The position numbers and the translations under genes are program-made. The notes under the pieces are model-generated. The model was not told where the DNA came from, searched no databases, and saw only the letters and a program-made list of their open reading frames with translations. From IMG/VR virus record IMGVR_UViG_3300042541_001760, positions 197,053 to 261,052 of that record: a stretch of DNA of 64,000 nt; one strand, written 5' to 3'. Shown one piece after another: positions 3,635 through 61,787 of this stretch; position 1 is the stretch's first letter, and the number at the start of each line of letters is the position of its first letter.

Positions 3635-4568
3635 ATCTGACATTCAATCTGACATACATATCCCCTAACCCGTTGTTCCTGAACCCCTTTGATTTTAATC
3701 TTAGGGGTTTTGTTGTATCAAACTCATCTGGCATCTTAATAGCCAACTTACCATCAGGGTGTGGTATCTCAAAACTATCCGACTTTAACTCATCAAGATT
3801 AAAAAACTTATTGTATATGAGATCGTTATTAACCTTCTCAAAATCTTCCAATGGTTGGACATTAAATTTTATGAGTAAGTTACCATAACTACCATTTATA
3901 AAATCCCCTTTACCTTGAGCCTTAATGAATTGTCCATTATCAATTCCGTGAGGTATGGCAATATTAATTGAGTCCATCATATCTTTTGTTCCTGAACCAA
4001 CACAAGAGTGGCAGGTGGTCTTAAATGTAAATCCTCTACCACCACATCCATTACAAGCGGTTCTAACCATCTGAACAAACATACCGGTACCTACTCTTTG
4101 TGTTATTGATCCGGCGCCACCGCACATTCCACATTGTATCCTTTCTCCACCACTACCACTACAATCCTGACATTGGTGTTTTCTATTATATACTATATTT
4201 TTTTGAGCTGACTTATATGAATCCAATACACTTATATTAACATCAACCACTTTATCAGGGGCTTGTCTTTGTTGTTGTTGGGGATTACCTCCACGACCAC
4301 CACCGAAGAACTGAGCAAACAAATCTTCCATAGATCCACCTCCACCACCAAATCCTGCCATTGGGTTGTTTCTTTGGTTATCGTATCGTTTTCGTTTATT
4401 ATCGTCTCCAATCGTATCATAAGCCTGAGCAACCTCCTTGAATATATTCTCATCCCCTCCTTTATCGGGGTGATGCTCAACCGCTTTCTTCCTATACGCT
4501 TTTTTTATTTCATCTTGGGTTGCGGTTTCGGAAACTCCTAACACTTCATAATAATTGGGTTGTGCCAT
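3624..4568 (-). CDS. dnaJ: DnaJ/Hsp40 co-chaperone
   Basis: J-domain (NYYEVLGV...HHPDKGG), G/F-rich linker, four CxxCxGxG motifs, C-terminal substrate-binding domain. Confidence 0.97.
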   Translation of the reverse strand: MAQPNYYEVLGVSETATQDEIKKAYRKKAVEHHPDKGGDENIFKEVAQAYDTIGDDNKRKRYDNQRNNPMAGFGGGGGSMEDLFAQFFGGGRGGNPQQQQRQAPDKVVDVNISVLDSYKSAQKNIVYNRKHQCQDCSGSGGERIQCGMCGGAGSITQRVGTGMFVQMVRTACNGCGGRGFTFKTTCHSCVGSGTKDMMDSINIAIPHGIDNGQFIKAQGKGDFINGSYGNLLIKFNVQPLEDFEKVNNDLIYNKFFNLDELKSDSFEIPHPDGKLAIKMPDEFDTTKPLRLKSKGFRNNGLGDMYVRLNVRFKK

Positions 4569-12613: not shown

Positions 12614-13414
12614 TTACATATATTCAAAAAGAACCGAACTTTCATTTCGTAATTTACGAAGAGCCTTCTCTTTAATCTGTCTCACACGTTCTTTAGTAAG
12701 ATTGAAGTCGTCACCGATGTCCTCCAAAGTTCTTGGTGTCCCCGTTAGACCGAAATAATCCTCAATGATGGATCTCTCTCTTTTGTCCAAAATACCTAAC
12801 ACATCCATAAGTTTTTCTTTCAACTTATCTTTGGTATCAAAACCATCGTCAGGCATTACACAATTCTCATTTACGATTACATCAATAAGTGTATCTCCGT
12901 CTTCATTAATCTCGTCGTTAAGATTGACCATTGAAGGTAGTGAGGTGAACTTATCGGACAATTGCTTGCCATTGTTCTCAACCTCTTTTTTAGCTCGTTG
13001 TAGGTCTTGTACGACATTAACAGGGAGTCGTATGGTTCTTGCGTTCTCGTTAAGAGATTGGAGAATACATTGACGAACCCACCATACCGCATATGATATA
13101 AATCGTAGGTTCTTATTCCAATCAAAATTCTCAATGGCTTTAATCAATCCCATATTACCTTCGGCAATTAAATCGGGGAATGGTAATCCTTGATTCTGAT
13201 ATTGTTTTGCCACGGTAATAACAAAACGTAAATTACCTTCAACTAACTCCTGATGTATCTCATCTTTCTGTCTATCTGTTAGGTTTCCTGTGGCCATCAT
13301 AGCAGCCAACTCACGTTCTCTATCAGGTGTCATAACCTTAATCTTTCTTAGATCTTTAAGATAAGATTGAATCTCGTCTTGGTTGATCGGTATTCCTGTG
13401 TTTTTCTCTCTCAT
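12614..13414 (-). CDS. Sigma-70 family RNA polymerase sigma factor, Bacteroidota sigma-A-like
   Basis: Region 2 NLRFVITVAKQYQNQGL...FISYAVWWVRQ; region 4 TLEDIG...LTKERVRQIKEKALRKLR; no region 1.1. Confidence 0.95.
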   Translation of the reverse strand: MREKNTGIPINQDEIQSYLKDLRKIKVMTPDRERELAAMMATGNLTDRQKDEIHQELVEGNLRFVITVAKQYQNQGLPFPDLIAEGNMGLIKAIENFDWNKNLRFISYAVWWVRQCILQSLNENARTIRLPVNVVQDLQRAKKEVENNGKQLSDKFTSLPSMVNLNDEINEDGDTLIDVIVNENCVMPDDGFDTKDKLKEKLMDVLGILDKRERSIIEDYFGLTGTPRTLEDIGDDFNLTKERVRQIKEKALRKLRNESSVLFEYM

Positions 13415-16826: not shown

Positions 16827-19157
16827 TTATTGAGTAATCCTACTAATATTATTTTCTTTTGTGATTCTTATTACGTTGTCCGCCCAATTAGTGATTAGAG
16901 GATTGTGAGTTATGACGAATATCTTCTCAAAATAATCCTTAATCTTAACGAAGAATTCATATACCATATCTAAGTTGTCATTGGATATTTTACCGAACAC
17001 CTCATCCATAACATTTATATTAGGTTTTGGTAATGAACATACCTTACTTAATACCGATCTTAATGCTAGTGAAGCAATCGTCTTTTCATACCCACTACCT
17101 GATGACATCAACTTCTCTACCTGAGTATCGTTATCAATCATAATAAACTCAACTTCATTCTTATCGTTGATTCTGACTTCAAGTTTGAACTGACAACTAT
17201 CTTCCAATAATCTTTGTAACTCAGAATTAATAATTGGTATCATTGTTTTCATAATCAACTTTGATATACCGTTCTTACCATAGACCTCCAAATAAAGTTT
17301 ATAATACTTTTCTCTTTCTGACTCTTCGGATATCTTTTGAATAAGTGTCATATTTTCCACAATCTTATTATTAAGAGTTTGAGTTTGATATGTTAGATTC
17401 GTTATCTCCCTATCTATCTTATTCTCTTCCATATTAAGTTCGTCCATACGGATGTTCGCCTTAATTATCTGACTTTCAATTTTAAGGTTCTGTTCAATCT
17501 TGGTTTGAATTTGATTATACCGGTTTAACTTGTCCTTAATCGCATCAATTTTAAGATTATTACTTTCAATATTAACCTCGTATTTCTCTTTGATTAACTT
17601 GTTTTTCTCGTATTCATTAAACTCTTTCTTAAGTTGAACGAAACCCTTCTCTTTGCCCGATAAATCAAGCATTAACTCGGTTATTTGACCATAATGCTGG
17701 TTATATGAGGCAAGTTCCCCCAATTTTGTCTTGGTAATTTCCGCATTTAATAACTCAATTCCGCAGTGTTCACACTTGATTCCACCCGATACAGATTTCG
17801 CCAACTCATTAAGGTTTGCGATTTTGGTTTCCGTTTCAATCTTCTTAACAAGTTGTTCGTTATACTCTTCCTTTACCTTGTCGTGTTTGTCCTCGTGATA
17901 AAATGAGGATGGTTCAACAACATTAATCTTGGATAGGTCTTCAATTAACTTTTTATTGGTATAGTCAATCTGTGTGATGTCCTCGTTAAGTTTGGTTGGA
18001 TTAAGGATGGCAATTGCGTTGTCAATGTCATTATGTTTCTGAGAAACTAATCCATCTCTATAGTCCTGACCCTTCTTAATTCTTCCCTTAACATCCTCCA
18101 ATTGTTCTTGGTGTTTTATTAGGGTTTCATTGTTTTCGGTAATCTTTGTCTTGGCCGATTCAATATCCTGTTTCAATTGTTCGGTGTTATAAACATTGGA
18201 CAACATAGATTTTGAATATTTACTATACAAATCTTTACCTATCTCCTCTTTTTTCTTTAGAGATTCCAAACCAAGAAACCTTGATAATACCTGACCCCTT
18301 GCGGTTGGTTTGGCGTCAATTAAATCCTCCAAATTAGATCCTGTGGTTAGAATGGTTGTTAAGAAGTCGTCCATCTCACCGATTGATGTTTTGATAAACT
18401 TTTCTGTCTCAACTCTTTGTTCCCCCGTGAAATTCTGTAAACTTCCGTCGGACAACTTTTTAAAGAAGTCCAACGTAGTTTTTACATTCCATTCACCGGC
18501 TTTTGACATTTTTCTCTCAATGGTTCTGATAATCAAATAGTTATCACCATCAATCATAATATCACCACGAACTGACACCTTGTTCTTATCTGTAAATCTA
18601 TTAAAGATTTCTTCTGCCTTTTGCGTCTTTGTTGTCGTGTTAAAGAATAGGAATAGTAATAAGTCAACGGTAAGGACGGTCTTACCCCCAAAATTAGGTG
18701 GATTTGATTCTACAACGGTAATACCATTACATAAGTCAAAATCAATCACCTGATCCTCACCATACGATAAGAAATTGGAGAACTCTATCTTTTTAACAAA
18801 CCACTTCTTAAATGGTGTTACTTCGGACTGGTCTAATACCAATTCATTCTCAACTTGGGCATCAATTCTCAATACCTCCGGTAGATAATCCTCTGCCGAT
18901 TTTGAGATTAGAAAGTTCTTCATCAACTCCTGTTGATAATTTTTATCCAAGATGTTAAACGATATGTCAACCGATTGAGTCGTATCCTCCGATGTCTTAA
19001 CCTTAGTTATAACATTAACATTATTTGAAGCGTATTTTTTTTGGAAGTATTGTTTTACACTTTTGATTTTCTCTTGTGTGAAATTCTCAGGTGCATCTTC
19101 CCACACCACTTTGACGTAGGGATTCTCCAATTCGGATATATCCAAATTATGTTTCAT
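16827..19157 (-). CDS. SbcC/Rad50/gp46-like ABC ATPase with an extra N-terminal domain
   Basis: KIEFSNFLSYG, P-loop variant NPPNFGGKT, coiled coil with CEHC hook, signature variant SGSGYE, MDEVFG and ITHN. ATG 19157 preferred over track start 19241. Confidence 0.92.
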   Translation of the reverse strand: MKHNLDISELENPYVKVVWEDAPENFTQEKIKSVKQYFQKKYASNNVNVITKVKTSEDTTQSVDISFNILDKNYQQELMKNFLISKSAEDYLPEVLRIDAQVENELVLDQSEVTPFKKWFVKKIEFSNFLSYGEDQVIDFDLCNGITVVESNPPNFGGKTVLTVDLLLFLFFNTTTKTQKAEEIFNRFTDKNKVSVRGDIMIDGDNYLIIRTIERKMSKAGEWNVKTTLDFFKKLSDGSLQNFTGEQRVETEKFIKTSIGEMDDFLTTILTTGSNLEDLIDAKPTARGQVLSRFLGLESLKKKEEIGKDLYSKYSKSMLSNVYNTEQLKQDIESAKTKITENNETLIKHQEQLEDVKGRIKKGQDYRDGLVSQKHNDIDNAIAILNPTKLNEDITQIDYTNKKLIEDLSKINVVEPSSFYHEDKHDKVKEEYNEQLVKKIETETKIANLNELAKSVSGGIKCEHCGIELLNAEITKTKLGELASYNQHYGQITELMLDLSGKEKGFVQLKKEFNEYEKNKLIKEKYEVNIESNNLKIDAIKDKLNRYNQIQTKIEQNLKIESQIIKANIRMDELNMEENKIDREITNLTYQTQTLNNKIVENMTLIQKISEESEREKYYKLYLEVYGKNGISKLIMKTMIPIINSELQRLLEDSCQFKLEVRINDKNEVEFIMIDNDTQVEKLMSSGSGYEKTIASLALRSVLSKVCSLPKPNINVMDEVFGKISNDNLDMVYEFFVKIKDYFEKIFVITHNPLITNWADNVIRITKENNISRITQ

Positions 19158-19167
19158 GTTTTCGTAA

Positions 19168-19359
19168 TTAAAGTTCTTGGGCGGATTGAATAAGTCCAGT
19201 GTCTTCCGTGTCACCAGATGGTGTTGTTTTGAGTTCCTCAAGTTGTTTTGCCATTAATTGTTCAAATGATTTTTGGAAATGTGCTTTTTCGGCGCCGATT
19301 CTCTGAGTTCTTGCCTTTGATTTCGCTTTGTGGTTTTTTCTGTTTTTAGATGTTGGCAT
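19168..19359 (-). CDS. Small basic protein
   Basis: 63 aa, K/R-rich N-terminus (MPTSKNRKNHKAKSKARTQR). Confidence 0.6.
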   Translation of the reverse strand: MPTSKNRKNHKAKSKARTQRIGAEKAHFQKSFEQLMAKQLEELKTTPSGDTEDTGLIQSAQEL

Positions 19360-19732: not shown

Positions 19733-20131
19733 TTATAATATTGATTTTATATTTGAACCTGAGTGGTAAACTGCTCCTCGTGATAATACCACGTCTTTAA
19801 AGTGGTTTGCCATTTCCTCAAGTTGGTTTATTTTTTCGTCTCTTAATGATAATTCTTTTTTTAATACCTGTAAAGTACCCTCCAACAATTTAATCTTTGT
19901 TTCGTCACAAGGTTTATCAACAACCCTCTCCACAATCTTTTCAACCTCAATCTCAATTACTTCAGGTTCTTTACCATTAATAAGACCATATTTATCTATC
20001 GCATATCCCTTCTTAAAGCAATATTGGATATACTTTTGAACGTCATCTATATTGTTTAATTTACAGAATATGTTTACGTTTTTCAGATCACTATCTGAAA
20101 TTTTAATGATTGACAAGTCGTTCTGTTCCAT
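19733..20131 (-). CDS. Hypothetical coiled-coil protein
   Basis: 132-aa ORF in the operon. Confidence 0.65.
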   Translation of the reverse strand: MEQNDLSIIKISDSDLKNVNIFCKLNNIDDVQKYIQYCFKKGYAIDKYGLINGKEPEVIEIEVEKIVERVVDKPCDETKIKLLEGTLQVLKKELSLRDEKINQLEEMANHFKDVVLSRGAVYHSGSNIKSIL

Positions 20132-20882
20132 CTACTAAATTATCTATTGAATCTATCTTGAATGATAGAAATGGTTTAGGGTTTTTTAAATCCACAAATT
20201 CGTATTTATCTTCCTTCACATTGTAAATTCCGTACCCGTGTTTTTTTATGGTCTCACCATAGTTCTGTTGGATTGTTGACCCAACCATATACGCCTTCTT
20301 ACCTCCAGGGATGTCAAATACTTGTCGTTTGTGAATATCCCCACATAAAACTAAATCACACCCACCGAACTTATCTGACTCAAACCCTGAATCAAATTTA
20401 TACCCAATATCGGTTGTTAATCCTTGTACCGGTCCGTGAAATAATCCAATATTTAATTTACCATTTTTAGGTATCTCAGGTGGTATGTTATGGTCAATCA
20501 ATGAATATACACACCAATTGATGTTATCATCCTCATGTGTCCCTCTATTCTTATAATAAACAATGTTTTGATTGTCTAATGAATCAATAATGGGAGTTAG
20601 AGCGTCTAATCTAGATTGATTAGACTCCAAAAAATCGTGATTACCAATGATTACAATTGTTTTGGCAATCTTTGAACATTCTGTTAATACCCAAACCACA
20701 AACTCAATAAGTTCGGGTGTCATTTGGTTCTTTGAATGTACGAGGTCTCCTGTGAAAACAATTCTGTCGGGGGTAACATCTCCCCATTGTTTAAACATAT
20801 CTTTCAATATTGACTTATACAAATCGTGATCCTTGAATAGTCGTATGTGTAAATCTGAGAAGTGTATTAATTTATCAATCAT
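20103..20882 (-). CDS. SbcD/Mre11/gp47-like metallophosphoesterase nuclease
   Basis: SDLH, TGDLVH, GNHD, FHGP and GDIH motifs; likely start MIDKLIHFSDLH at 20882. Confidence 0.92.
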   Translation of the reverse strand: MIDKLIHFSDLHIRLFKDHDLYKSILKDMFKQWGDVTPDRIVFTGDLVHSKNQMTPELIEFVVWVLTECSKIAKTIVIIGNHDFLESNQSRLDALTPIIDSLDNQNIVYYKNRGTHEDDNINWCVYSLIDHNIPPEIPKNGKLNIGLFHGPVQGLTTDIGYKFDSGFESDKFGGCDLVLCGDIHKRQVFDIPGGKKAYMVGSTIQQNYGETIKKHGYGIYNVKEDKYEFVDLKNPKPFLSFKIDSIDNLVDGTERLVNH

Positions 20883-21147
20883 ATCTTTCGTATTTATCTC
20901 CCGTATCTTGGTCTCCGTTGTGGAATATGATTTTAGGTCCTTCCGGTTTATATGGATGTGTGTTCCAATTCTCACCAAGTAATTCTCTTTTATTATCCAA
21001 AAAATTATCCCTATCCCGTTTAATAATGTTGGATGTTTCTGAAACCTCTTTCATCTTTTCCTTTATAGTTTCAAGGTCTTTCTCAACAACCCACTCTCGG
21101 TTTGTCATAAATCCATCTAGCCAAACATAAAACTCCTTATGTGTCAT
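20875..21147 (-). CDS. Hypothetical protein
   Basis: 90-aa ORF with overlapping start/stop junctions on both sides. Confidence 0.65.
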   Translation of the reverse strand: MTHKEFYVWLDGFMTNREWVVEKDLETIKEKMKEVSETSNIIKRDRDNFLDNKRELLGENWNTHPYKPEGPKIIFHNGDQDTGDKYERYD

Positions 21148-29087: not shown

Positions 29088-30701
29088 TTATGGGTTGTTA
29101 ATAGACATAACATTAGTTTCTGGCGCCCCTGTGACATTACAACAAGTACATCCATTAATTGATGAGGTACTTAGTATAAACACTTTATCGGTTGATTTAA
29201 CGTAACAAGACAAGGGACTTAATTTAAGTATTGAAGTTATAACCGTTCCTGATATCACATCCACCCCTGATATTGTAATATTGTTATACGTTAAAGTGGT
29301 TGCAGTTGAATATTCCTTAGTGTTTGGTGGGCATATGCCGGTTGTTGATCCAGATTGTGTTGAAGATGCGGTTGTTGGTGTTATACCTATAGGGACTCCA
29401 TTTTTATGTACTTGAACAGTATTAGTTATACTTCCAAACGCCGGATTGGTCGCCACCATAAAATTATTATATTCGGATAAATCAAAAGTTATTATTGTAC
29501 CGGATGGTAAGTTTGATATAATGTTATTATTTATGTCTCTAACAACAACTTTAAATGTTAATTTTTTCTGTCCCACCCCTGTTGATACTATTGTATTATC
29601 TATTGTTAAATTATACGAATTTGTTGCCGGTCCGGCCGGAACGATTGCGTTCTGTTGTCTTACTGTTGACGATCCATCTTGTACCCAAATACTATAAGTA
29701 CCCGCCGGTAAGTTATTAAACATTGGTGATTGTTGTGTTGTAATACCTCCATCTTTTGAATATATTACGGGTGGTTGACCGTTAAGGGGATTTATAATTA
29801 AAGATCCCGTAGAGTCGTTAACACAATTAGGGGCACTAATAGTTGGTGGATTTAAACTCATCACAGGCGCATTACAAGCCCCCGCATATGTGGTGGCATT
29901 ACCCGCTGGTCCGAATAAAGTCCAACCACCAATTGGTGGAATACTCGCGTTCGTGTTTATTATCAATGTTGAGTCAATATCAACAAACCAATAAGCTTGT
30001 GATAATCCACCCCATCTCATATCGAGAGTACCAGAAATCCAAGTGGGTTTACCATTTACAATACTCCCCGTTGGTGTGAATGTATATAATGTTGTAATAT
30101 TACCTGTAGTATATTGTAAACATAAATTAGGGTACACAACAGGAATTGGTGTCGGTGTTGGTGTAGGAGTTGGTGATGGTGTTTGACTAGGAACAATTAA
30201 AGAACAGGTTGTTGTTGCCGTATAATCAGACCCTCCGTTTGGCCAATTGTAGTCGGTTACTGTTACAGTATACACCCCATTAGAAGTGGCATTAGTTAAA
30301 GTAGGACCTAAAGTTCCTGTACTCCAAAGAATTTTATAAGGTGGTGTACCACCCGATACTAACATAGTAATACTATTATTTAATAGATTTGGACTACAAC
30401 TAATAGTCATTGGCGTTATTGTAACAATATCACACTGATTAACTCCTGTAACTCTATTACAGACATACAATGCGGTACATTCACCACAATTACCATAAGA
30501 ACCCTCTAAAGTGACTCCTGGCGATAAAAAAGAATATGTGGGTGAATCAGGATACAATGAACCAGAACTAATAACAGTACAACAACCACTGAAATAATTG
30601 GGTATAATTACATACTTTATATCACCAATCGTTAATGTTGGAGAATTGGTTAGTGTAAACGTAAAACTGGAATCGCAACAGGATTTGAAATAATGGGTCA
30701 T
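29088..30701 (-). CDS. Tail fibre/adhesin-like protein with SprB-like modules and PT linker
   Basis: VSGGTPPYKILWSTG...YTVTVTD and LPAGTYSIWVQD; Cys-rich N-terminus. Confidence 0.65.
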   Translation of the reverse strand: MTHYFKSCCDSSFTFTLTNSPTLTIGDIKYVIIPNYFSGCCTVISSGSLYPDSPTYSFLSPGVTLEGSYGNCGECTALYVCNRVTGVNQCDIVTITPMTISCSPNLLNNSITMLVSGGTPPYKILWSTGTLGPTLTNATSNGVYTVTVTDYNWPNGGSDYTATTTCSLIVPSQTPSPTPTPTPTPIPVVYPNLCLQYTTGNITTLYTFTPTGSIVNGKPTWISGTLDMRWGGLSQAYWFVDIDSTLIINTNASIPPIGGWTLFGPAGNATTYAGACNAPVMSLNPPTISAPNCVNDSTGSLIINPLNGQPPVIYSKDGGITTQQSPMFNNLPAGTYSIWVQDGSSTVRQQNAIVPAGPATNSYNLTIDNTIVSTGVGQKKLTFKVVVRDINNNIISNLPSGTIITFDLSEYNNFMVATNPAFGSITNTVQVHKNGVPIGITPTTASSTQSGSTTGICPPNTKEYSTATTLTYNNITISGVDVISGTVITSILKLSPLSCYVKSTDKVFILSTSSINGCTCCNVTGAPETNVMSINNP

Positions 30702-31714: not shown

Positions 31715-34009
31715 TTAACAAGATACACAATTTATATTATATAATATGGATACTTGTACCGTAATGTTTTGGTTTGATAAAGCGTCCGTGGTTTCTTCAC
31801 AACTTGTGTTAACCGTAATTGTATTATTGTTGGTGTCAACTATAACTTCACCAATCCCTGTTACGTCACTTAGTAGTGTATCAACAGTATTATACCAACT
31901 ACTATTTGCTGGAACGTCGTTTAAAGTTGTGGCGGTATAAAATGATTGAGAGTAAGAGTTTCCAGCCACTGTGGCAACCGCAGAGAATGTTGCCGAACTT
32001 AATAAACAATCCGTACAACCATTAGTTAAATCCAAATACCCTTCAAGTAACATTTTACCTAAAGTTCTTTCTGTAATACCACCACTTGATATCGTACTTT
32101 CACAAATATTGTACTCGCTCAAGTTTGATAATATAAATGATCCTGTTACTATTACCGATTTAGTTATCGTACATCCGTCGGTGTCTTGTACTGTTAAAGT
32201 ATATGTCCCTGCGGATAAATTATCAATTGCCGTACCTGTTTGACCATTGACATTTGATGACCATGTTAGGGTAAATGGGGGTATTCCTTGGAATATGTTA
32301 GCGAATATCTCTCCATTGTATCCGTTAGTGGAGCTTGTTGGTATTAATATAAAATTTATTTGCTCGCTCTCATCTATGTAGAAATTACTAGTTGATATAC
32401 ACCCATTACTATCCGTTACCGTCGCCTGATAATAACCTGACGATAAATCATTAAAAGTATATGAACTCAATGGTATTTGACCTGATGGTGGAATAGGAAG
32501 TCCATTACCTCCTTGAATTGAATATATAAATGGTGATGTTCCGCCTGTCGTTTTAAATATCTTTACTATTCCATTATTACCCCCGCAAGTAGTTCCAGAT
32601 GCTTGTGTCGTAACATTATATGATAAAGTTGACTGAACAACAACAGTACCGCTATAAGTACAAATACCATCAGTTATTGTTAGTGTGTATGTATCAGGAA
32701 ATAGATTATTGAACGAAGTATTTAAACTTTGTTGTGGTCGATTATCCGAATCCCCATTACTTTTTTTAAGTGAATAATCATAACTAGAATTTGGATTACC
32801 ATTCAATGTTATTGAAATACTACCATTACTATTACCACAAACACTACTAATGACGTTAGTTGTTGCGACCGCAAAACTATTTGGTTGAGCTAAACTTACT
32901 TGTGTGTTAACACTACAAAGGGACGAATCGGTTACGGTTATATCATAAATACCCCCATATAAATTAGGAAAGGTATATGTTTGTTGGTAAGATATATCAA
33001 TATAATTTATTGATGGTATGTAATACCTATATGGTGGAGTACCATTTATTACCGTTATCTGTATTGCCCCGTTGGGGGCAAAACAAGTCGGCGGTGTTGG
33101 AGTTATAGGCCCTAATGACACCGGAGCCACATCGGTAATAAGCGCATTTTTGGTTGATGTACAACCTTGTGCATCTGTTATAGTAACACTATAATCGCCA
33201 GCGGTTAATCCTGTTATTGAAACTCCAGTTAACGATACATTATTTTCTAATAATCCTGGTGTTGATGATGACCATAAATAAGTATATGGAGCAACTCCGG
33301 TTAATCCCGTAATAAATATTCTACCAACACCAGTACTAACATTACCACAATTTGAGCTATTAACTGAATATAACCCATAATTTAATAGTGTGGAATTCTG
33401 TATTATAGAATTTTCACTTCTACCTGTACACCCTCCTCCGTCATCGGCAATTACATAATACATACCGTACGGTAAATTATCGAAAACGAATGTATCGGAG
33501 TTGGTGGATCCTGTTCTTATTAAATCAGGTTGATACGGTTCATTTGGTGGTGTATTAATAGGAGGTACTCTATTGTTATTATTTTCTAAATATAATTTAT
33601 ATGTGGCCAAACCGTTAGTATTAGCAACCGTTGCGGTTAAAGACCCATTTACTAAACCACAAGTAGTTGGGGTTACGTTAGTAATCGACACACAACTAGA
33701 TGCCGAAGAAACATATATGTTAAGTGTTGTTCTATTGTTTTGTGTTAACTCGGTAGGTCCTCCACAAGAGTCATTTATTTCTAGTACATATAAACCTGCC
33801 GGTAGATTACTATATGTTCTCGGTCCATTTAAAATACCTGTTTCAACCGAAGGTCCTCCACCCTCATTTGGGGACCAAGGATTTGGTAGATACCAAGTAA
33901 TACTCATCGGTTCTGATGTCGTAGATAGATTGAGGGTAAATGACCCCGATGCATTATTTTGACAGTCACCAACTACACTAAAATCACTAAAATTAAAATC
34001 GCAAGCCAT
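31715..34009 (-). CDS. SprB-repeat-like tail fibre/adhesin
   Basis: Repeated GxxPYTYxWS...LxAGxYxVTITDxxGC modules with CxxxNG starts. Confidence 0.75.
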   Translation of the reverse strand: MACDFNFSDFSVVGDCQNNASGSFTLNLSTTSEPMSITWYLPNPWSPNEGGGPSVETGILNGPRTYSNLPAGLYVLEINDSCGGPTELTQNNRTTLNIYVSSASSCVSITNVTPTTCGLVNGSLTATVANTNGLATYKLYLENNNNRVPPINTPPNEPYQPDLIRTGSTNSDTFVFDNLPYGMYYVIADDGGGCTGRSENSIIQNSTLLNYGLYSVNSSNCGNVSTGVGRIFITGLTGVAPYTYLWSSSTPGLLENNVSLTGVSITGLTAGDYSVTITDAQGCTSTKNALITDVAPVSLGPITPTPPTCFAPNGAIQITVINGTPPYRYYIPSINYIDISYQQTYTFPNLYGGIYDITVTDSSLCSVNTQVSLAQPNSFAVATTNVISSVCGNSNGSISITLNGNPNSSYDYSLKKSNGDSDNRPQQSLNTSFNNLFPDTYTLTITDGICTYSGTVVVQSTLSYNVTTQASGTTCGGNNGIVKIFKTTGGTSPFIYSIQGGNGLPIPPSGQIPLSSYTFNDLSSGYYQATVTDSNGCISTSNFYIDESEQINFILIPTSSTNGYNGEIFANIFQGIPPFTLTWSSNVNGQTGTAIDNLSAGTYTLTVQDTDGCTITKSVIVTGSFILSNLSEYNICESTISSGGITERTLGKMLLEGYLDLTNGCTDCLLSSATFSAVATVAGNSYSQSFYTATTLNDVPANSSWYNTVDTLLSDVTGIGEVIVDTNNNTITVNTSCEETTDALSNQNITVQVSILYNINCVSC

Positions 34010-50399: not shown

Positions 50400-52814
50400 T
50401 TAGGATGAACACCCAAAACAATCAACTAAACTACTGTCAGGTTTTGGTGGTAAATTCATTTTAGAGTAATCAATCTCAGGTAGTGGTTGATTAGTTTGAC
50501 TAATATCCACCGCTAAGTGTTTCGCTCCCGTTGATATCGCCTTTGTTCTAACATAATAACAAAGTGTCTTTAATCCTTTATCCCACCCGTGAAAGTGTGA
50601 TGTAGTAATTTTAGATACCGTTGGATTAGCCAAGTAGATATTCATTGATTGTGATTGGTCAATGAATGGTGCTCTATCGGCCGACATATCAATTAATTCT
50701 CTTTGTGATATCTCCCAAATTGTTTTGTATTTCTTAAGTAGATACTCAACTCGTTTAACCTTTTTAGAGTGATTCTTATCTTCAGGATCCAAATACTTAT
50801 TAAAGTTAATGTTTTGAATTGACCCCTCGTTCATAATGATTTCGTGTTTAACCGATTCGTTCCAAATACCCATCTTCTCAAAGTCATTGATAAGATACTT
50901 GTTAACAATCATAATCTCACCACCGACAACTCTACGATTAAATAATGCCGAGTGAGCCGGTTCTGTCATTTCAAATGACCCTGTGATTTTTGCCGATGAC
51001 GCTACAGGCATTTGTGCGGTATTTAAACTATTACAAACTCCATATGTTTTAACATCCTCTTTTAGTGAATCCCAATCCCATAATCCTGATACATCTTCGT
51101 TAGTTAATCCCCACATATCAAATTGGAAAATTCCTTTTGACATTGGTGACCCGTCAAAGTATTTGTATGGTTGATATTCACCAGTCTTACAAAGATTATT
51201 ACTTTCATAAACCGCTCCGTAATAGATTGTTTCAAATATCTCTTTGTTTAACTTCTTAGCCTCATCAGATGTGAACACATAATCCATTAGGAAAAATACA
51301 TCAGCAAGTCCTTGTGTTCCGATGGCAATGGCTCTTTGTTCCATACCACCTTTTAAACCCTTTTCAGTTGAGTAGTGATTGATATCAATAACTTTATTAA
51401 GTGCTCTGACAACCTTTCTTGTTTCGTGAAACAATAAATTAAAGTTAAATTTACCATCAATAATGAAGTTCTTTAGAATCATTGAAGATAGGGTACAGAT
51501 TGCGGTCGTATCTTCGTCCGTGTATTGATAAATCTCGTTACATAGATTGGATTGTTTAATAACCCCGATATTCTGATGGTTCGTCTTTCTGTTAGCACTA
51601 TCTTTTGAACATAGATAGGGAACTCCGGTCTCAATCTGAGATTCAATAATCTTATACCAAATACTCTGAGCGGTAACTTTCTTACCTAATCCCATTTCAA
51701 CCGCCTTGTTATAGTTCTCTTCATATTCTTCACCATAACATTCTTGTAGTGGTTTAATACCTGCTCTTTTAATGTCGTTAGGACAAAATAAATACCAATC
51801 GGAACTCTCTCTAACTGCTCTCATAAAGTTATCAGGAATCCAAAGTGCGGTGAATAAATCTCTCGCTCTTAATTCTTCTTGACCTGTGTTTTTCTTAATA
51901 TCCAATAGGTCAAAGATGTCTTTATGCCAAGGTTCAATGTAGATTGCGGCACTTCCAGGTCGTCTTCCTTGTTGGTTAAAGAATCTCAATGACTCATTAA
52001 CGATTTTAAGGTACTTAAGTAATCCACCCGCGAATCCACCTGATGATGAAATTCTACTTTCTTTAGACCGGATATTACTCATAGATAAACCAATACCTGC
52101 AGCGTCTGATGAGTATGTTGAGATGTCAGTTAATGTATTCAACAATCCACTTCTTGAATCACTATTGTTATAGTGTAACACACAAGATGCTAGTTGGGGA
52201 ACAATAGTTCCCGAATTAATCATAATCGGTGTTGCCGGTGATATTAGTTGTGTGGATAAAGAAAAATAGTAATTAACCGCTTCTTCAAATGATTTTGTAA
52301 CCCATAGAGCAACCCTCATATACATATGTTGTGGTCTCTCTAATACAATACCTTCAGAGTTCTTCAAAAGATACATTTCTTGTAGTGATCTCCAACCAAA
52401 ATAGTCAAAGTTATAATCATTGTCGTGACGAATAACCTCATCAATGTTTTCCGCTCCATAACTCTCAATGATTTCCATAAGTTTATCACTTACGATACCA
52501 TCTACGTGTAGGGTATGCATTGTGTTACAGAAACTTGGGTCAGTTTCTTTATGGTGTAAAGAGATAGCAATACTTGCCGCAAATCTACTATAGTCATAGT
52601 GACTACCAGTATATGAGGCGGATATCTCATAAATCAATTTATCCAATTCTTTAGTGGTAATCCTACCCTCCGTCGGAACAGAGGTTATGACCTTAATAAA
52701 GATTTCGTCAGAATTGACATTTAAAGATTTAGATGCTTTCTTAATCCTGTTATATATTTTTGAGGGGTTAAATGATGTTTCTTCCCCGTCTTTCTTAATA
52801 ATTGTTAGTGACAT
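50400..52814 (-). CDS. nrdA: Class Ia ribonucleotide reductase alpha subunit with ATP cone
   Basis: ATP cone, LASCVL, SNLCNEI, YYVR and C-terminal CFGC; no intein-sized insertion. Confidence 0.97.
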   Translation of the reverse strand: MSLTIIKKDGEETSFNPSKIYNRIKKASKSLNVNSDEIFIKVITSVPTEGRITTKELDKLIYEISASYTGSHYDYSRFAASIAISLHHKETDPSFCNTMHTLHVDGIVSDKLMEIIESYGAENIDEVIRHDNDYNFDYFGWRSLQEMYLLKNSEGIVLERPQHMYMRVALWVTKSFEEAVNYYFSLSTQLISPATPIMINSGTIVPQLASCVLHYNNSDSRSGLLNTLTDISTYSSDAAGIGLSMSNIRSKESRISSSGGFAGGLLKYLKIVNESLRFFNQQGRRPGSAAIYIEPWHKDIFDLLDIKKNTGQEELRARDLFTALWIPDNFMRAVRESSDWYLFCPNDIKRAGIKPLQECYGEEYEENYNKAVEMGLGKKVTAQSIWYKIIESQIETGVPYLCSKDSANRKTNHQNIGVIKQSNLCNEIYQYTDEDTTAICTLSSMILKNFIIDGKFNFNLLFHETRKVVRALNKVIDINHYSTEKGLKGGMEQRAIAIGTQGLADVFFLMDYVFTSDEAKKLNKEIFETIYYGAVYESNNLCKTGEYQPYKYFDGSPMSKGIFQFDMWGLTNEDVSGLWDWDSLKEDVKTYGVCNSLNTAQMPVASSAKITGSFEMTEPAHSALFNRRVVGGEIMIVNKYLINDFEKMGIWNESVKHEIIMNEGSIQNINFNKYLDPEDKNHSKKVKRVEYLLKKYKTIWEISQRELIDMSADRAPFIDQSQSMNIYLANPTVSKITTSHFHGWDKGLKTLCYYVRTKAISTGAKHLAVDISQTNQPLPEIDYSKMNLPPKPDSSLVDCFGCSS

Positions 52815-52825
52815 AGTTTTATTTT

Positions 52826-53773
52826 TTAAAAATCCTCATCAAATGAAATAGCCTCGTTTAATTTTGCCTTTTGATACTCAATAGTTCTACTTTCAAAGAA
52901 GTTACCTTTTGTTTCCACGGCAATTTGTTCCATAAACTTGAATGGTTGTTCTACATTAAAGTGTTTTTTACATCCAAGTTTCATTAATAGTTGGTCAACA
53001 ACAAACTCCAAATATTGTTTCATTAAGTTTTGATTCATACCAATTAACGATACAGGTAATGACTCAGTAATGAATTCCTTTTCAATTTCAAGCGCTGATA
53101 ATAGAATTTCTTTAATTCGTTTTTCGGAGATTTTATCGTCAATGTGTTTGTTGAACAAATGAATAGCGAAATCACAATGTAGGTTTTCGTCCTTAAAAAT
53201 CAAGGCATTTGCGTTACATAATCCTTGCATAATACCTCTTGATTTCATCCAAAATATAGAACAAAATGAACCTGAGAAAAATATACCCTCAACCGCCGCA
53301 AATGCTATCAATCTTTCTTGAAAAGATGCGTTATCAATCCAATCTAATGCCCATTTAGCCTTTTTCTGAACTGCCGGTAGAGTTTCAATTGCTCTGAAAC
53401 ATTCAAGTTTTTCATCGTGATCGGATATGTAAGTGTCAATCAATAACGAATACATTAGTGAGTGTATGTTCTCCATCGCCAACTGCATTCCGTAGAAGAA
53501 TTTAGCCTCAGGATACTGAACCTCTCTGTAGAAATTTTCCGCCAAGTTTTCATTAACGATACCATCAGAAGCCGCGAAAAACGATAATATGTTTTTTATG
53601 AAGTATTTTTCGTTATCTGATAATGATTCCCAATCACGGATATCACCACTCAAATCAATTTCTTCTGCCGTCCAAATGGCCGCTTGGTGTTGTTTATAAA
53701 ACTCCCAAATATCATCGTGTTCAATTGGGAAGATAACAAATCGGTGCGGGTTTGGTTGTAATATTTTTTCCAT
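52826..53773 (-). CDS. nrdB: Class Ia ribonucleotide reductase beta subunit
   Basis: [36 protein letters not shown]. Confidence 0.97.
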
Positions 53774-58673: not shown

Positions 58674-59549
58674 TTAGAATGGCATGTCCTCGTCGGGTGC
58701 CGACTCTGCCTGTGGGTCAGGAGTTTTCTCCACTTTACCACTTGATGATTTTGATTTACCTCCGATTACTGTTTCATCCACGGTAGAATCACTATAAGCG
58801 TATTTACCTGCGTCTGAGTCCCATCTTGGAGTTTCTCCACGAGCAATCGCTTCAAGATACTCTACGGGTTTTTTAGAATAAACGTCAGCCCAAGTTAGTT
58901 CGTCTTCAACCCAAGATTTAAGGGTATCTTCGTTATCACTAATAGGTTGTGGGTCGTCATACATAACCGCTTGGATTACCGTGTAATAAGAACCATTGTT
59001 TGTCTTTGACTTTGTTAGTTCAAGAATCAAATCTCTACCTTTTTGTGGGTCTGTAACATCACCTTTTGCTCTCCAAATTGGAATGATTTTGTCAAGGATA
59101 CCCTCTTTTTTGTAGTTGTGTTTGAAACGCCAGAATTTAACTCCGTCCTGCTCTGCGTCTCGGTCAATTACCTTTACAATGTAAAACATACGAGATCGGT
59201 AGTTACCCGCCAATTTCTTATCCGCTTCTTTACCTGTTGACATAAGGTCTTCAAAAACCTCGTTAAGTGGTGATCTTTCGTTGTCGTTTTTTCCTGGATC
59301 GTAAAGTTTAATCCATTTACCGTCAACTTGAACTTCGTGAAACCATACTTCTTTGAAAGGTGATGACCCGTCAGCGGTTGGTAGGATACGAATTCGTTTT
59401 TGTCCTTGTTTTTCTTTATCGCTTAGAATTGCCGCGAAATACTTCTTCATTCTATCATCTTGTGACATCTTTGATGTTGAAGATGAGCTTGATTTTTGTG
59501 TCTGTTCGTACTGTGCCAGTACCGCATCCATAGTGTTTGTTGTCGCCAT
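58674..59549 (-). CDS. gp32-like single-stranded DNA-binding protein
   Basis: IRILP, EVWFH, YIVKVIDRD, KGRDL and an acidic tail ending DEDMPF. Confidence 0.85.
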   Translation of the reverse strand: MATTNTMDAVLAQYEQTQKSSSSSTSKMSQDDRMKKYFAAILSDKEKQGQKRIRILPTADGSSPFKEVWFHEVQVDGKWIKLYDPGKNDNERSPLNEVFEDLMSTGKEADKKLAGNYRSRMFYIVKVIDRDAEQDGVKFWRFKHNYKKEGILDKIIPIWRAKGDVTDPQKGRDLILELTKSKTNNGSYYTVIQAVMYDDPQPISDNEDTLKSWVEDELTWADVYSKKPVEYLEAIARGETPRWDSDAGKYAYSDSTVDETVIGGKSKSSSGKVEKTPDPQAESAPDEDMPF

Positions 59550-59584: not shown

Positions 59585-59612
59585 ATTATAGGTGATTTTG
59601 TGAATTTGTCAA
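59585..59612 (-). promoter_or_regulatory. Consensus sigma70-type promoter TTGACA-N16-TATAAT upstream of SSB
   Basis: Both hexamers are exact on the minus strand, 35 nt upstream of the ATG. Confidence 0.7.
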
Positions 59613-59615
59613 ACG

Positions 59616-59649
59616 AAAAAGGGTATGAATTTTTAGTTTCATACCCTTT
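59616..59649 (-). terminator. Intrinsic terminator closing the paralogue array
   Basis: Perfect 12-bp stem AAAGGGTATGAA/TTCATACCCTTT with an 8-nt loop and T run. Confidence 0.85.
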
Positions 59650-59712
59650 AATTATAGTGATATATTTTTAATTAATCTAATGTTTTAATCCTCTTCCAAT
59701 CCTAAACGATGA

Positions 59713-60024
59713 TTATTGCCGAGAATCAAGTGGCATCACTCCCCTTAAATCATAAGACTTATCCAACCAATGTCCTAAAATTGATTTAGTTTCACGGGGC
59801 TTAAGACGAAATAACAATTCAAGTATTAACCAAATACGACCATAATCAATAAAAACCCATTCATTTTCTTTATCATATTCCATAACCATATTATCATTGG
59901 AATCAACATATAATATTAAGTTAGGATAACCTTTATGTTTTTTTAATGTTAAGTTACCATAGTGTATATTTAGCCACTTGATAACTACTCTTTCTAACTG
60001 ATTTTTATTTACCTGTATGTCCAT
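59713..60024 (-). CDS. Array paralogue 4 (103 aa)
   Basis: MDIQVNKNQLERVVIKWL...WLDKSYDLRGVMP plus a variable tail. Confidence 0.85.
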   Translation of the reverse strand: MDIQVNKNQLERVVIKWLNIHYGNLTLKKHKGYPNLILYVDSNDNMVMEYDKENEWVFIDYGRIWLILELLFRLKPRETKSILGHWLDKSYDLRGVMPLDSRQ

Positions 60025-60033
60025 AAGTTAATC

Positions 60034-60175
60034 CTCTTCCAACTAAATTCACACTTTTAATATTTGCTTGTATGGTGTTACTCCCTCTAATTTGTAAGAC
60101 TCTTCCAACGGTGCTTAATACACCTGAAATTGCTTGAAGGGTGTTACTCCCTCTAATTTGTAAGACTCTTCCAAC
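60034..60175 (-). repeat. CRISPR-like mini-array: two identical 36-nt repeats plus a partial third, 30-nt spacers
   Basis: GTTGGAAGAGTCTTACAAATTAGAGGGAGTAACACC at 60140-60175 and 60074-60109; GTTGGAAGAG again at 60034-60043; spacers 60110-60139 and 60044-60073. The repeat is certain; CRISPR function is not shown. Confidence 0.95.
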
Positions 60176-60432
60176 CAAACCTTAATAATTGATTGAGTAT
60201 CTCTGTAGTTAAGATAAAATAGTGATTCAATTTTTAACCAAATTTGACCATAATTAATATAAACACGCTCAGTTTTCTTATCGTATTCCATCATAACTTC
60301 ATTACTTGGATTAACGTAAAATACTGAGTTAACGTAACCATTACGCTTCTTTGGTGTTAAGTTACCAAAGTGTTTATCTAGCCACTTGATAACTACTCTT
60401 TCTAACTGATGTTTATTCACCTGTATGTTCAT
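60115..60432 (-). CDS. Array paralogue 3 (105 aa)
   Basis: MNIQVNKHQLERVVIKWL...WLEESYKLEGVTP plus a variable tail. Confidence 0.85.
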   Translation of the reverse strand: MNIQVNKHQLERVVIKWLDKHFGNLTPKKRNGYVNSVFYVNPSNEVMMEYDKKTERVYINYGQIWLKIESLFYLNYRDTQSIIKVWLEESYKLEGVTPFKQFQVY

Positions 60433-60435
60433 AAG

Positions 60436-60771
60436 TTAATCCTCTTCAAACTTCATTAAACTACCAACCAATTGTAGAAGCGTTACTCCCTCCAAATTAT
60501 AAGTATCTTTCAACCATAAATTAATAATTGAATGAATTTCACCATATTTAAGGTGAAATAATGATTCAATCATTAACCAAATACGGGATTCACTAACCCA
60601 AAGATAGTTGTTTTTTTTATCGTAACCCATTAAAACCTCGTTATCTGAATTTACGTAAAATAATACATTAGGATTATCTTTACGTTTCTTTGGTGTTAAA
60701 TTACCGAAGTTTTTGTTTAACCACTTGATAACTATCCTCTCTAACTGCTCCTTATTTACCTGTATATCCAT
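60436..60771 (-). CDS. Array paralogue 2 (111 aa)
   Basis: MDIQVNKEQLERIVIKWL...WLKDTYNLEGVT-LLQLVGSLMK-FEED. Confidence 0.85.
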   Translation of the reverse strand: MDIQVNKEQLERIVIKWLNKNFGNLTPKKRKDNPNVLFYVNSDNEVLMGYDKKNNYLWVSESRIWLMIESLFHLKYGEIHSIINLWLKDTYNLEGVTLLQLVGSLMKFEED

Positions 60772-60788
60772 AAGTTAATCAATCCCAT

Positions 60789-61094
60789 TCAAGCGTAGTC
60801 TGGTGTTACTCCACTCAATTTATAGGTCTCCTCCAACCATATCTTCATAATTGATTTAATGTCATCATACTTTAGGTGAAATATAGATTCAATTTTTGAC
60901 CAAACATATCTATAATGAATATAAACACTATCAGTTTCCTTATCGTATTCCATTACAACCTTATTATCTGAGTTTACGTATAATACGTAGTTAGGATTAT
61001 TTTTATGTTTCTTTTGTGTTAAGTTACCATAGTATAAGTTTAACCACTTAATAACAACTCTATCCAATTGATTTTTATCTACCTGTATGTCCAT
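60789..61094 (-). CDS. Array paralogue 1 (101 aa)
   Basis: MDIQVDKNQLDRVVIKWL...WLEETYKLSGVTP plus a short tail. Confidence 0.85.
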   Translation of the reverse strand: MDIQVDKNQLDRVVIKWLNLYYGNLTQKKHKNNPNYVLYVNSDNKVVMEYDKETDSVYIHYRYVWSKIESIFHLKYDDIKSIMKIWLEETYKLSGVTPDYA

Positions 61095-61097
61095 AAG

Positions 61098-61787
61098 TTA
61101 CTTAACCTCAACAGGTCTTTCATTACCCGGAAACGCTCTGAAACTATCCTTAACATCACTAGCCGAAAAATCTTTCACTTGGTCTGTTGTTAACACATAT
61201 TCATTCTTACCCGACTTTTCCATATCCTCTTCTTTATCAACGAAGAAATCAGTTAATTTTTGGTTAAATGGACCTGAATCAATACTTCTCAACTCCAATT
61301 TTTCTTGTGGTGTTTTTGGTCTGTATTTGTCAATCTTAGCCTCTAAACTATCAATCTTACCAACCAATTTATCCATCTCACCCAATTTATTTTGTAGTGT
61401 GTCTAATTGAGAAAATAGGTTGTTGAAGTATTCTTCTTGTTTTGTTTCAATAGTTTTTTGTGAATTAACCAAGTCAGTGATATCCAATTCTTCGGATCCT
61501 TCACCTGTGTCTCCACCTTCTTTTTCTTCACCTACTTTTTCAACATCGGGGTCGTTCTCAATATCTACAGGTGTAGGCCCTGCCGGAGCTGCCGGTGGGG
61601 GTGGTGGTAATGCCGCTCCTGCGTCTCCCGGTGGTGGTGCGATTCCTCCTAAAGCGGGATCTGCCGGTGGTGCGTCTGCTGGTGGGGGTACTTCAAGGGC
61701 GTCTTGTTCATTGATATAATTGTTAATTTCATTATATCTTCTTAATTCTTCTAAGATTGTTTTATCTACATTCATTTTGTTAACCAT
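61098..61787 (-). CDS. Pro-rich acidic coiled-coil protein, putative head/scaffold component
   Basis: INE|Q leader, poly-Pro/Ala GC-rich segment, heptad region. Confidence 0.7.
   Translation of the reverse strand: MVNKMNVDKTILEELRRYNEINNYINEQDALEVPPPADAPPADPALGGIAPPPGDAGAALPPPPPAAPAGPTPVDIENDPDVEKVGEEKEGGDTGEGSEELDITDLVNSQKTIETKQEEYFNNLFSQLDTLQNKLGEMDKLVGKIDSLEAKIDKYRPKTPQEKLELRSIDSGPFNQKLTDFFVDKEEDMEKSGKNEYVLTTDQVKDFSASDVKDSFRAFPGNERPVEVK

Follow-up and report, generated by a model that had tools for sequence, protein, structure and literature searches.

In the 261-kb genome of a freshwater phage, four tandem paralogous genes of about 100 codons are located on the minus strand of the 64-kb window, that is, the whole stretch of DNA that was analyzed. 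The four paralogues (P1–P4) are 55–59% identical to each other; they can be aligned from residue 1 to the GVTP motif, after which they are unrelated. Their last 36 conserved nucleotides, referred to as the block, encode WLEExYKLxGVTP. Each block is followed by a variable segment and by a shortened copy of the block. P2 reads through its variable segment in frame to FEED-stop, whereas the others stop inside the segment. The features of the locus are summarized in Table 1. A degenerate 32-nt block pattern gave four hits, against 0.00 expected in shuffled sequences, indicating that the arrangement is more than chance.

Table 1. Coordinates of the features of the paralogue cluster, numbered within the window
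Feature	Position	Strand	Remarks
P1 ORF	60789..61094	-	101 aa
P1 block	60802..60837	-	36 nt, codons WLEETYKLSGVTP; 7-8 mismatches to the P3 / family-consensus repeat
P1 decayed unit	60775..60801	-	13-nt spacer remnant (60789-60801) plus remnant of the truncated repeat (60775-60788); compared with the intact homologous unit in relatives L006/L022
P2 ORF	60436..60771	-	111 aa; reads through its spacer to FEED-stop
P2 block	60479..60514	-	36 nt
P2 spacer	60452..60478	-	27 nt
P2 truncated terminal repeat	60436..60451	-	GTTTGAAGAGGATTAA; directly upstream of the P3 start codon
P3 ORF	60115..60432	-	105 aa; stop codon inside spacer A; structure model pLDDT 90.7
P3 array, repeat 1	60140..60175	-	last 12 conserved codons of P3
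P3 array, spacer A	60110..60139	-	30 nt, gene-proximal; absent from relatives L008/L004; fused with B in L053
P3 array, repeat 2	60074..60109	-	identical 36/36 to repeat 1; non-coding here
P3 array, spacer B	60044..60073	-	30 nt, distal; also present with 1 mismatch in L008 and 6 mismatches in L004
P3 array, truncated terminal repeat	60028..60043	-	directly upstream of the P4 start codon
P4 ORF	59713..60024	-	103 aa
P4 block	59732..59767	-	36 nt; most diverged, 11 mismatches to the consensus
P4 spacer	59701..59731	-	31 nt
Truncated terminal repeat at the end of the cluster	59676..59700	-	about 25 nt with mismatches; followed by a junction sequence conserved in L004, L005, L006 and L008
Intrinsic-terminator-like hairpin	59618..59649	-	closes the paralogue operon

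The first-pass annotation had described this locus as four paralogue cassettes, each ending in a conserved block, a hypervariable segment of about 30 nt and a partial block; all four ORFs and all four blocks were found where it had placed them, and its observation is confirmed. However, its description needs three refinements. First, a fifth full block lies behind P3, identical to the P3 block at 36 of 36 bases and with a period of 66 nt; P3 therefore carries a true array, in the order of repeat, spacer, repeat, spacer and truncated repeat. TRF did not report this array. Second, the partial block is the first 15–25 nt of the block itself, i.e. a truncated terminal repeat, and between genes it also forms the sequence directly upstream of the next ATG. 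It encodes L/F-E-E-D-stop, as had been stated, only when the spacer keeps frame 0. Third, spacers A and B of P3 share nt 4–10 (CAAGCAA), so the duplicated stretch is 46 nt with 2 mismatches.

The paralogues are real protein-coding genes. Both the sequence upstream of the first repeat and the repeat itself are coding, with dN/dS of 0.39 and 0.31; different from a typical CRISPR array, no non-coding AT-rich leader lies next to the first repeat. In the structure model of P3 the fold is predicted with confidence, and the block forms the end of a core helix (helix 3). The function of the protein could not be deduced by comparison: no Pfam or PHROG family matched, the best PDB hit had an E-value of 0.2 and a TM-score of 0.3, BFVD returned only uncharacterised freshwater phage proteins, and longer relatives carry no informative fused domains. 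The family comprises at least 1022 clusters at 50% identity and was found only in phage or metagenome DNA. Searches for relatives in bacterial genomes, both as DNA pattern and as protein, gave nothing, and Megablast of the region against GenBank phages found nothing.

To investigate whether the arrangement is general, as had been set as a test beforehand, we analyzed insert length and tail similarity across homologues. The architecture holds across hundreds of homologues. When the next repeat is well kept (2 or fewer mismatches in 22 nt), spacers are only 29 nt (13 cases) or 30 nt (8 cases), whereas decayed units range from 9 to 39 nt. Protein tails of homologues gave 29 nt in 22 cases, 30 nt in 22 cases and 31 nt in 3 cases. 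Insert length thus peaks sharply at 29–30 nt. The tails are not alignable; mean pairwise identity of the spacers is 0.275, inside the shuffle range. The conditions on alignability and length distribution under which the first-pass annotation would have been refuted are therefore not fulfilled. Repeats are identical or near-identical within the arrays of the relatives L005, L014, L022, L023, L036, L042 and L064, although paralogue blocks differ by 5–11 nt, and arrays reach 5–6 repeats. It could be argued that these are ordinary tandem gene duplicates with relaxed, fast-diverging 3' tails and a conserved upstream region of the next gene. The position of the partial block upstream of the next start codon, the divergence of spacer B by point mutation between relatives and the indels in the older paralogues P1, P2 and P4 (13, 27 and 31 nt) are compatible with it. 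However, this reading is already contradicted by the narrow length distribution, the random-level similarity between spacers, the perfect internal repeats and long arrays, and the G+C excess of the spacers described below, and we consider it most improbable.

The spacers look foreign. Their G+C content is 0.387, compared to 0.331 for phage 30-mers (p = 2e-5) and 0.271 for third codon positions (p = 6e-10); they are therefore not old neutral phage sequence. The spacers are also unstructured, with mean folding z-scores of 0.04 for spacers alone and 0.19 in repeat context, so the imperfect inverted repeats of integron attC sites are absent. A diversity-generating retroelement was not supported either, as the spacers are unrelated to each other and to anything else in 455 kb of related phage DNA, and no reverse transcriptase domain was found among the window ORFs.

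The first-pass annotation had offered two interpretations, a system that diversifies the C-terminal peptide (a 66-nt unit keeps frame) or protein-plus-guide cassettes in which each small protein carries its own repeat variant and guide; these are partly supported by our analysis. The second option fits the anatomy, as each gene has its own repeat variant because the repeat is its own last 12 codons, but guide activity of the spacers and binding of the repeat by the protein would be inferences from sequence alone. The first option, in which the product would be a tandem-repeat or multi-core tail with a conserved 12-aa box and a variable 10-aa peptide, is disfavored and very unlikely. Some arrays are fully in frame and open over 4–5 spacers (P0197/L064 and P0228/L063), the truncated repeat supplies stops in two frames, and 24 of 32 spacers are open in frame 0, against 20 and 19 in the other frames. 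However, this excess is not significant, and the long in-frame cases were noticed through protein searches, which cannot see out-of-frame arrays. In the DNA-based, frame-blind sample, 21–25 of 37–38 spacers are 29 nt and break the frame, so that the next repeat is read as WKRLTNW... or VGRDLQI..., and many spacers contain stops. The next repeat is read in all three frames, so the repeat is conserved as nucleic acid.

Several arrays carry signs of polarised growth, although this rests on few arrays and no time series. L014 shows a staircase of repeat variants (position 7: A,A,A,G,G; position 36: T,T,C,C) and L023 shows one too, as expected if the gene-proximal repeat is duplicated step by step. 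Distal spacers are shared while proximal ones differ (L022 against L027/L034; the window against L008), and the terminal repeat is truncated near nt 22–24. Genomes that are 98.5–99.7% identical differ by exactly one 66-nt unit. Distant family members repeat their own last 12 codons, whatever these are, which a position- and ruler-based mechanism predicts.

Recombination at the repeats is directly seen. In L046 against L043, homology resumes exactly at the second repeat; the same spacer (two cases) is followed by different downstream contexts that diverge after about nt 22 of the terminal repeat; L053 is a 66-nt deletion with a hybrid A/B spacer, and L008 carries a P2/P3 hybrid gene. Together with the CAAGCAA shared by spacers A and B, these observations may point to Cas-independent cassette shuffling, in which the block and its truncated copy are homology boxes at cassette borders, arrays arise by unequal crossing-over between alleles or paralogues with different tails, and the spacers are old non-homologous islands kept at a fixed length by an unknown constraint. 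We consider this unlikely. It explains neither where the unrelated spacers come from nor why well-kept units are only 29–30 nt while decayed units drift; spacer G+C is far from the neutral composition of the phage, repeats inside an array are identical although paralogue blocks differ, and the staircase patterns are not predicted.

Between paralogues, the repeat evolves like ordinary coding sequence: dS is 0.70 in the block and 0.67 in the gene body, and third-position entropy is 0.92 against 0.78. There is thus no sign of an effector constraining the repeat sequence, and one lineage (L014) has a quite different 3' half. A search for extra nucleotide-level conservation in or upstream of the repeat found only the TGG-TTG junction; the Leu87 codon is fixed as TTG (entropy 0.15), so the GTTG start of the repeat is conserved beyond coding need. 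The repeat RNA is unstructured (-1.1 to -3.7 kcal/mol, z-scores 0.1–0.8) and matches no Rfam CRISPR-DR family, and no complementary, tracrRNA-like anti-repeat was found in the 64-kb window. We first considered the direct repeat of Cas13b, but identity to it is only about 50% and the hairpin is absent; the repeat was therefore not assigned to type VI-B.

No cas gene lies next to any array. The neighbours are a gp32-like SSB, an unknown 229-aa protein, methyltransferases and small ORFs; PADLOC and Pfam found no Cas among window ORFs of 200 aa or more, and positions 141–261 kb of the contig (Ga0453072_0000002), the 120 kb of the genome that were read, have no Pfam-recognisable Cas. SprB, CHU_C and Por_Secre_tail domains are signals of a Bacteroidota host. 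No match to the repeat was found in one genome for each of 185,579 bacterial species, and no free-standing large array was found in metagenome contigs; both patterns also demanded the 3' half of the repeat, so host repeats sharing only nt 1–24 (GTTGGAAGAGNNTTACAAATTGG) would be missed. No protospacer was found, although the searches were limited and covered neither bacterial genomes nor metagenomes: seven spacers were searched as exact 24–26-mers in IMG/VR, 38 spacers against 455 kb of related phage DNA, four arrays against GenBank phages and two against plasmids, and only the arrays themselves or chance-level hits were returned. A literature search for the repeat strings found no paper, and we could not find the arrangement described.

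Taken together, these observations suggest, tentatively, that each paralogue is a real small protein gene whose last 36 conserved nucleotides double as the first repeat of a CRISPR-type mini-array. In this view, a ruler-type integrase of the Cas1-Cas2 kind would be supplied in trans, either by the probable Bacteroidota host or by an unseen part of the phage genome. It would cut at the junction between the gene body and the repeat (the conserved GTTG start) and again 36 bp downstream, and insert 29–30 bp of foreign DNA, so duplicating the gene-proximal repeat. As shown here, recombination between repeats, and between a repeat and the 22–24-nt truncated terminal repeat, then deletes units, swaps gene-plus-array cassettes between paralogues and keeps arrays short. 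The array would be co-transcribed with the gene operon. In this model every spacer is followed by at least the first 22–24 nt of a repeat, the layout of crRNAs that carry a 3' repeat tag (types II and VI-B); the most likely product would therefore be spacer-plus-repeat-tag RNAs that engage Cas proteins encoded elsewhere, as guides or as decoys. The anatomy, the length rule, the unrelatedness of the spacers, the staircase, the polymorphism between genomes and the recombination breakpoints come directly from our analysis, whereas the integrase, the RNA products and the function, guide or decoy, are inferred. In addition to the cas genes, host repeat and protospacers that the limited searches did not find, the 7–10 nt shared by the 5' ends of spacers A and B are not predicted by a precise integrase.

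The same evidence for ruler-type insertion also applies if the arrays are only scars or decoys of host adaptation. In this case, the gene ends would mimic a leader-repeat junction, the Cas1-Cas2 of the host would integrate prespacers into the many phage copies (at least 15 sites per genome), perhaps diverting adaptation away from the host array, and the arrays would be footprints with no guide function. The lack of nucleotide-level constraint on the repeat between paralogues, the repetition by each gene of its own sequence, the absence of a nearby cas gene or anti-repeat and the many copies of the site agree with this. However, prespacers taken during infection should often come from the phage itself, whereas none of the 38 spacers matches the related phage DNA and spacers A and B do not match their own 261-kb genome. 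Moreover, the truncated terminal repeat is kept over its first 22–24 nt in non-coding context in many lineages, which suggests that it is used, and no host repeat was found in the genomes scanned. We therefore regard this reading as unlikely. Also unlikely, but not excluded, is a repeat-spacer system that does not depend on any known Cas protein. The roughly 85-aa domain, which has no match among solved structures, together with its gene-encoded repeat and a 29–30-nt insert, would then form an autonomous phage cassette, either a protein-plus-guide unit or a new way of recording foreign DNA, with dozens of copies in each genome.

If the arrays are built by a CRISPR-type integrase, this shows adaptation machinery writing into phage genes, with a coding sequence serving as both leader and repeat; it would also mean that phages carry many small private arrays that standard CRISPR finders and gene callers treat as artefacts. 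If the RNAs are used, a widespread freshwater phage group either redirects or jams host Cas proteins with its own spacers. If no Cas protein is involved, this would be a second, independent way to make repeat-spacer arrays. In either case, the spacers are a readable record of encounters in lake phage populations, and the system is directly testable.

Among known systems, the closest are CRISPR arrays, especially those of Bacteroidota types II-C and VI-B; 36-bp repeats are reported for both in Flavobacterium columnare (PMC8092290). Like these, the phage arrays have 36-nt direct repeats identical within an array, unique spacers of 29–30 nt, a degenerate terminal repeat, variation at one end, a repeat that starts with GTTG, and a repeat-derived 3' tag behind each spacer, as in type II and VI-B crRNAs. 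Different from these, the first repeat is coding sequence and the leader is a protein gene, there are many tiny arrays per genome, each with its own repeat variant, and no cas genes were found in the part of the genome that was read. Cas13b repeats form a hairpin closed by GTTG...CAAC, which the phage repeat lacks; only the dimensions (36/30) and the GTTG start agree. The Cas13b repeat used for comparison was confirmed over its first 23 nt in PMC11512209.

Compact huge-phage arrays lacking Cas1/Cas2 (PMC7162821) and virus-borne mini-CRISPR arrays (Medvedeva et al. 2019, as cited in PMC10651486) are likewise phage-encoded, short (1–5 spacers) and without an adaptation module, in a huge-phage genome and with a proposed dependence on host Cas proteins. 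However, the known cases are intergenic and were recognised because their repeats match host arrays or sit beside cas genes; here, no host match was found with the patterns used, and the arrays are fused to a phage-specific gene family. RNA anti-CRISPRs (Racr, or solitary repeat units; PMC10651486) and phage-encoded sgRNAs (bioRxiv 10.64898/2026.06.01.729453) are also repeat-like elements in phage genomes without cas genes, often next to small phage genes, and a decoy function is plausible. Racrs, however, are non-coding mimics of a known host repeat with their own promoter and usually have no spacers, whereas here the repeats are coding, spacers turn over, and no mimicry of a known repeat was found in Rfam. 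In off-target ('neo-CRISPR') integration by Cas1-Cas2 at non-CRISPR sites (Nivala et al. 2018), any local sequence of repeat length reportedly becomes the repeat, which would explain why each gene repeats its own last 36 nt; that phenomenon is reported as rare events in a bacterial chromosome under Cas1-Cas2 overexpression, not as a conserved, family-wide feature of phage genes. Finally, in multi-core peptide precursors such as cyanobactin PatE, conserved boxes that are nearly identical at the DNA level also flank short hypervariable segments behind a conserved N-terminal part, but their cores are always in frame and translated, whereas about half or more of the units described here break the frame.

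In the window, four head-to-tail paralogues (P1-P4) of 101–111 residues in size are located on the minus strand, between an unknown 229-residue gene and a gp32-type single-strand DNA-binding gene. The four proteins share 55–59% sequence identity and align from Met1 to GVTP, and each gene ends in one 36-nt block. The first-pass annotation had claimed that each paralogue ends in a conserved block, a hypervariable segment of ∼30 nt and a partial block; this observation is confirmed, all four blocks were found where it had placed them, and a pattern search for the block gave four hits against 0.00 expected in shuffles. The layout is sharper than claimed. After P3 the block occurs twice, the two copies are identical at 36 of 36 bases with a period of 66 nt; they are separated and followed by 30-nt segments (spacer A, proximal to the gene, and spacer B, distal), and the array ends in the first 16 nt of the block, directly upstream of the next start codon. 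The order is thus repeat, spacer, repeat, spacer, truncated repeat. P2 has one 27-nt segment, P4 has one 31-nt segment, and P1 retains a decayed remnant. The operon is closed by one terminator-like hairpin; just after it, upstream of the gp32-like gene, lies a perfect sigma-70 consensus (TTGACA, 16 nt, TATAAT), which is notable for a phage with Bacteroidota-type genes that also encodes its own sigma factor.

Coordinates of the features in the window and in related loci and contigs (L numbers)
Feature	Location	Strand
Unknown gene (229 residues)	61787..61098	
First 36-nt repeat of the P3 array	60175..60140	minus
Second 36-nt repeat of the P3 array	60109..60074	minus
Terminator-like hairpin	59649..59618	minus
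Sigma-70 consensus	59585-59612	minus
gp32-type single-strand DNA-binding gene	59549..58674	
Sigma factor gene	12614-13414	
SprB repeats and type IX secretion C-terminal signals	29088-30701 and 31715-34009; L009:2408-3004; L046:2701-6321	
Auxiliary gene set	3624-4568, 16827-19241, 20103-20978, 50400-53773; L043:11272-12081	
SmpB homologue	L007:3893-4327 (= L060:167-601, contig about 176.3-176.7 kb)	
P3 and P4 region affected by the JGI gene calls	L050-L058 (window 59713-60432 equivalent)	
Absence of P1	L059:1497-1501 (window about 60772-61097 equivalent)	
Spacers ending in ATT	L042:2232-2400	minus orientation
Spacers beginning with TGT	L063:380-600	
Partial match to spacer 3 of L023	L043:7923-7943 (also L046, L047, L048, L062)	

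The window is the last 64 kb of a 261-kb IMG/VR contig. Phage proteins with SprB repeats and type IX secretion C-terminal signals (CHU_C, Por_Secre_tail) point to a Bacteroidota host; one 1206-residue Por_Secre_tail protein is present in the related contigs L046 and L047, but it is absent from the same slot in the genome of the window. The auxiliary gene set includes a full DnaJ, an SbcC/Mre11-like pair, both ribonucleotide reductase subunits, a Clp protease and a PD-(D/E)XK nuclease (the coordinates of these two were not resolved), and a tRNA-synthetase class II core fragment. The same genome holds further clusters of the paralogue family, with at least 15 copies in the 120 kb examined. About 600 nt downstream of one copy, the phage encodes an SmpB homologue (Pfam E = 8e-47), whereas ARAGORN found no tmRNA or tRNA in the window or in about 56 kb of neighbouring contig sequence (141-197 kb). 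If the arrays are cleaved in the mRNA, the upstream ORFs would lose their stop codons, which might link the two features.

The paralogues are real genes. The dN/dS ratio is 0.39 for codons 1–85 and 0.31 for the block. The AlphaFold model has a pLDDT of 90.7; in this predicted structure, the first half of the block (WLEExYKL) forms the end of helix 3 and carries invariant core residues. However, the predicted fold matches nothing in the PDB, it matches only uncharacterised freshwater phage proteins in BFVD, and neither Pfam and PHROGs nor the longer relatives gave any functional clue. The family is large, with 372 word-index hits and 1022 clusters at 50% identity, but it is absent from one genome for each of 185,579 bacterial and archaeal species. 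Some database proteins (P0123, 760 residues; P0133, 346 residues; P0252, 425 residues) contain three to five copies of the domain in one ORF; they may be neighbouring paralogues fused by in-frame read-through of their arrays.

The architecture is general and acts at the nucleic-acid level. In the homologues, GVTP is followed by 10 variable residues, then the block appears again in frame 0 (LEExYKLxGVTP), in frame +1 (WKRLTNW...) or in frame +2 (VGRDLQI...), corresponding to spacers of 30, 29 and 31 nt, respectively. In DNA from 60 loci, the well-kept units have spacers of 29 nt (13 cases) or 30 nt (8 cases) only, whereas the decayed units range from 9 to 39 nt. The spacers are unrelated to each other, with a mean identity of 0.275, and they have no structure. 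The G+C content of the spacers is 0.387, compared to 0.331 for phage 30-mers and 0.271 for third codon positions; therefore, they are not old, neutrally drifting phage sequence. All three spacers of locus L042 end in ATT, spacers 2–4 of locus L063 begin with TGT, and the second-to-last base is T in 18 of 32 spacers; these could be remnants of a flanking, PAM-like motif or imprecise repeat borders. The arrays reach five to six repeats (loci L014, L023, L063 and L064), and the last repeat always keeps only its first 22–24 nt or so. Distant members of the family repeat their own last 12 codons, whatever these are (for example LEETDKLREYTP or VEEGLKLGSVTP).

Comparison between loci also revealed the dynamics of the arrays. 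L014 and L023 show a staircase of repeat variants, in which the proximal repeats share derived bases and the distal repeats share ancestral ones; this is the pattern expected from serial duplication of the gene-proximal repeat. L022 and L027/L034 share the distal spacer and differ in the proximal one, whereas L008 and L004 carry only spacer B, with 1 and 6 mismatches, respectively. Among the contigs that are 98.5–99.7% identical to the window, one (L053) lacks exactly 66 nt and has a hybrid A/B spacer. The JGI gene calls omit P3 and most of P4 in every contig that carries the two-repeat array, but they include both genes in L053, which has one repeat fewer; we speculate that the region may have been masked as a CRISPR by the annotation pipeline. 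One ENA contig (L059) with an identical P2 lacks P1 altogether, and L008 carries a P2/P3 hybrid gene; gene content of the cluster therefore varies between near-identical phages. Recombination at the repeats is also seen directly. In L046 against L043, the gene body plus repeat plus spacer is exchanged, and homology resumes exactly at the next repeat; in addition, the same spacer can be followed by different downstream contexts.

Different from a standard CRISPR system, no cas gene was found beside any array or in contig positions 141-261 kb. There is no anti-repeat in the window, no repeat hairpin and no Rfam CRISPR-DR match. The genome and metagenome pattern searches for the repeat did not identify any host array; however, these patterns also required the 3′ half of the repeat, and host arrays that share only nt 1–24 would have been missed. 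No protospacer was found for any spacer tested. The only non-self spacer hit is a 19/21 match (E = 0.1) between spacer 3 of L023 and the first paralogue of the 150-kb cluster, which is AT-rich and probably due to chance. Between paralogues, the repeat shows no nucleotide constraint beyond coding, with the exception of the TGG-TTG junction, which fixes the GTTG start.

Taken together, the length rule, the unrelated G+C-richer spacers, the identical internal repeats, the staircases and the truncated terminal repeat are, on present evidence, best explained by CRISPR-adaptation-type insertion at the gene/repeat junction, with recombination between repeats superimposed on this process. These features and the recombination events were observed in the sequences, whereas the insertion machinery, the RNAs and their function are inferred. 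The RNAs may serve as guides or as decoys, or the arrays may be mere scars of host adaptation, and a Cas-independent mechanism cannot be excluded. The first-pass annotation had proposed either a C-terminal peptide-diversifying system or protein-plus-guide cassettes, and this interpretation was only partly supported; peptide diversification is unlikely because most units break the frame, whereas each gene does have its own repeat variant.

The literature search returned no paper containing these repeat strings. A 36-bp ruler fits the proposed insertion, and 36 bp is the repeat size reported for the type II-C and VI-B arrays of Flavobacterium columnare (PMC8092290). Huge phages are known to carry compact arrays without Cas1/Cas2, possibly using host Cas proteins (PMC7162821), and phage repeat mimics that act as decoys are also known (PMC10651486; bioRxiv 10.64898/2026.06.01.729453). 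Three things are new here: the first repeat is the coding 3′ end of a phage-specific gene family, each gene has its own repeat variant, and a genome carries many such mini-arrays.
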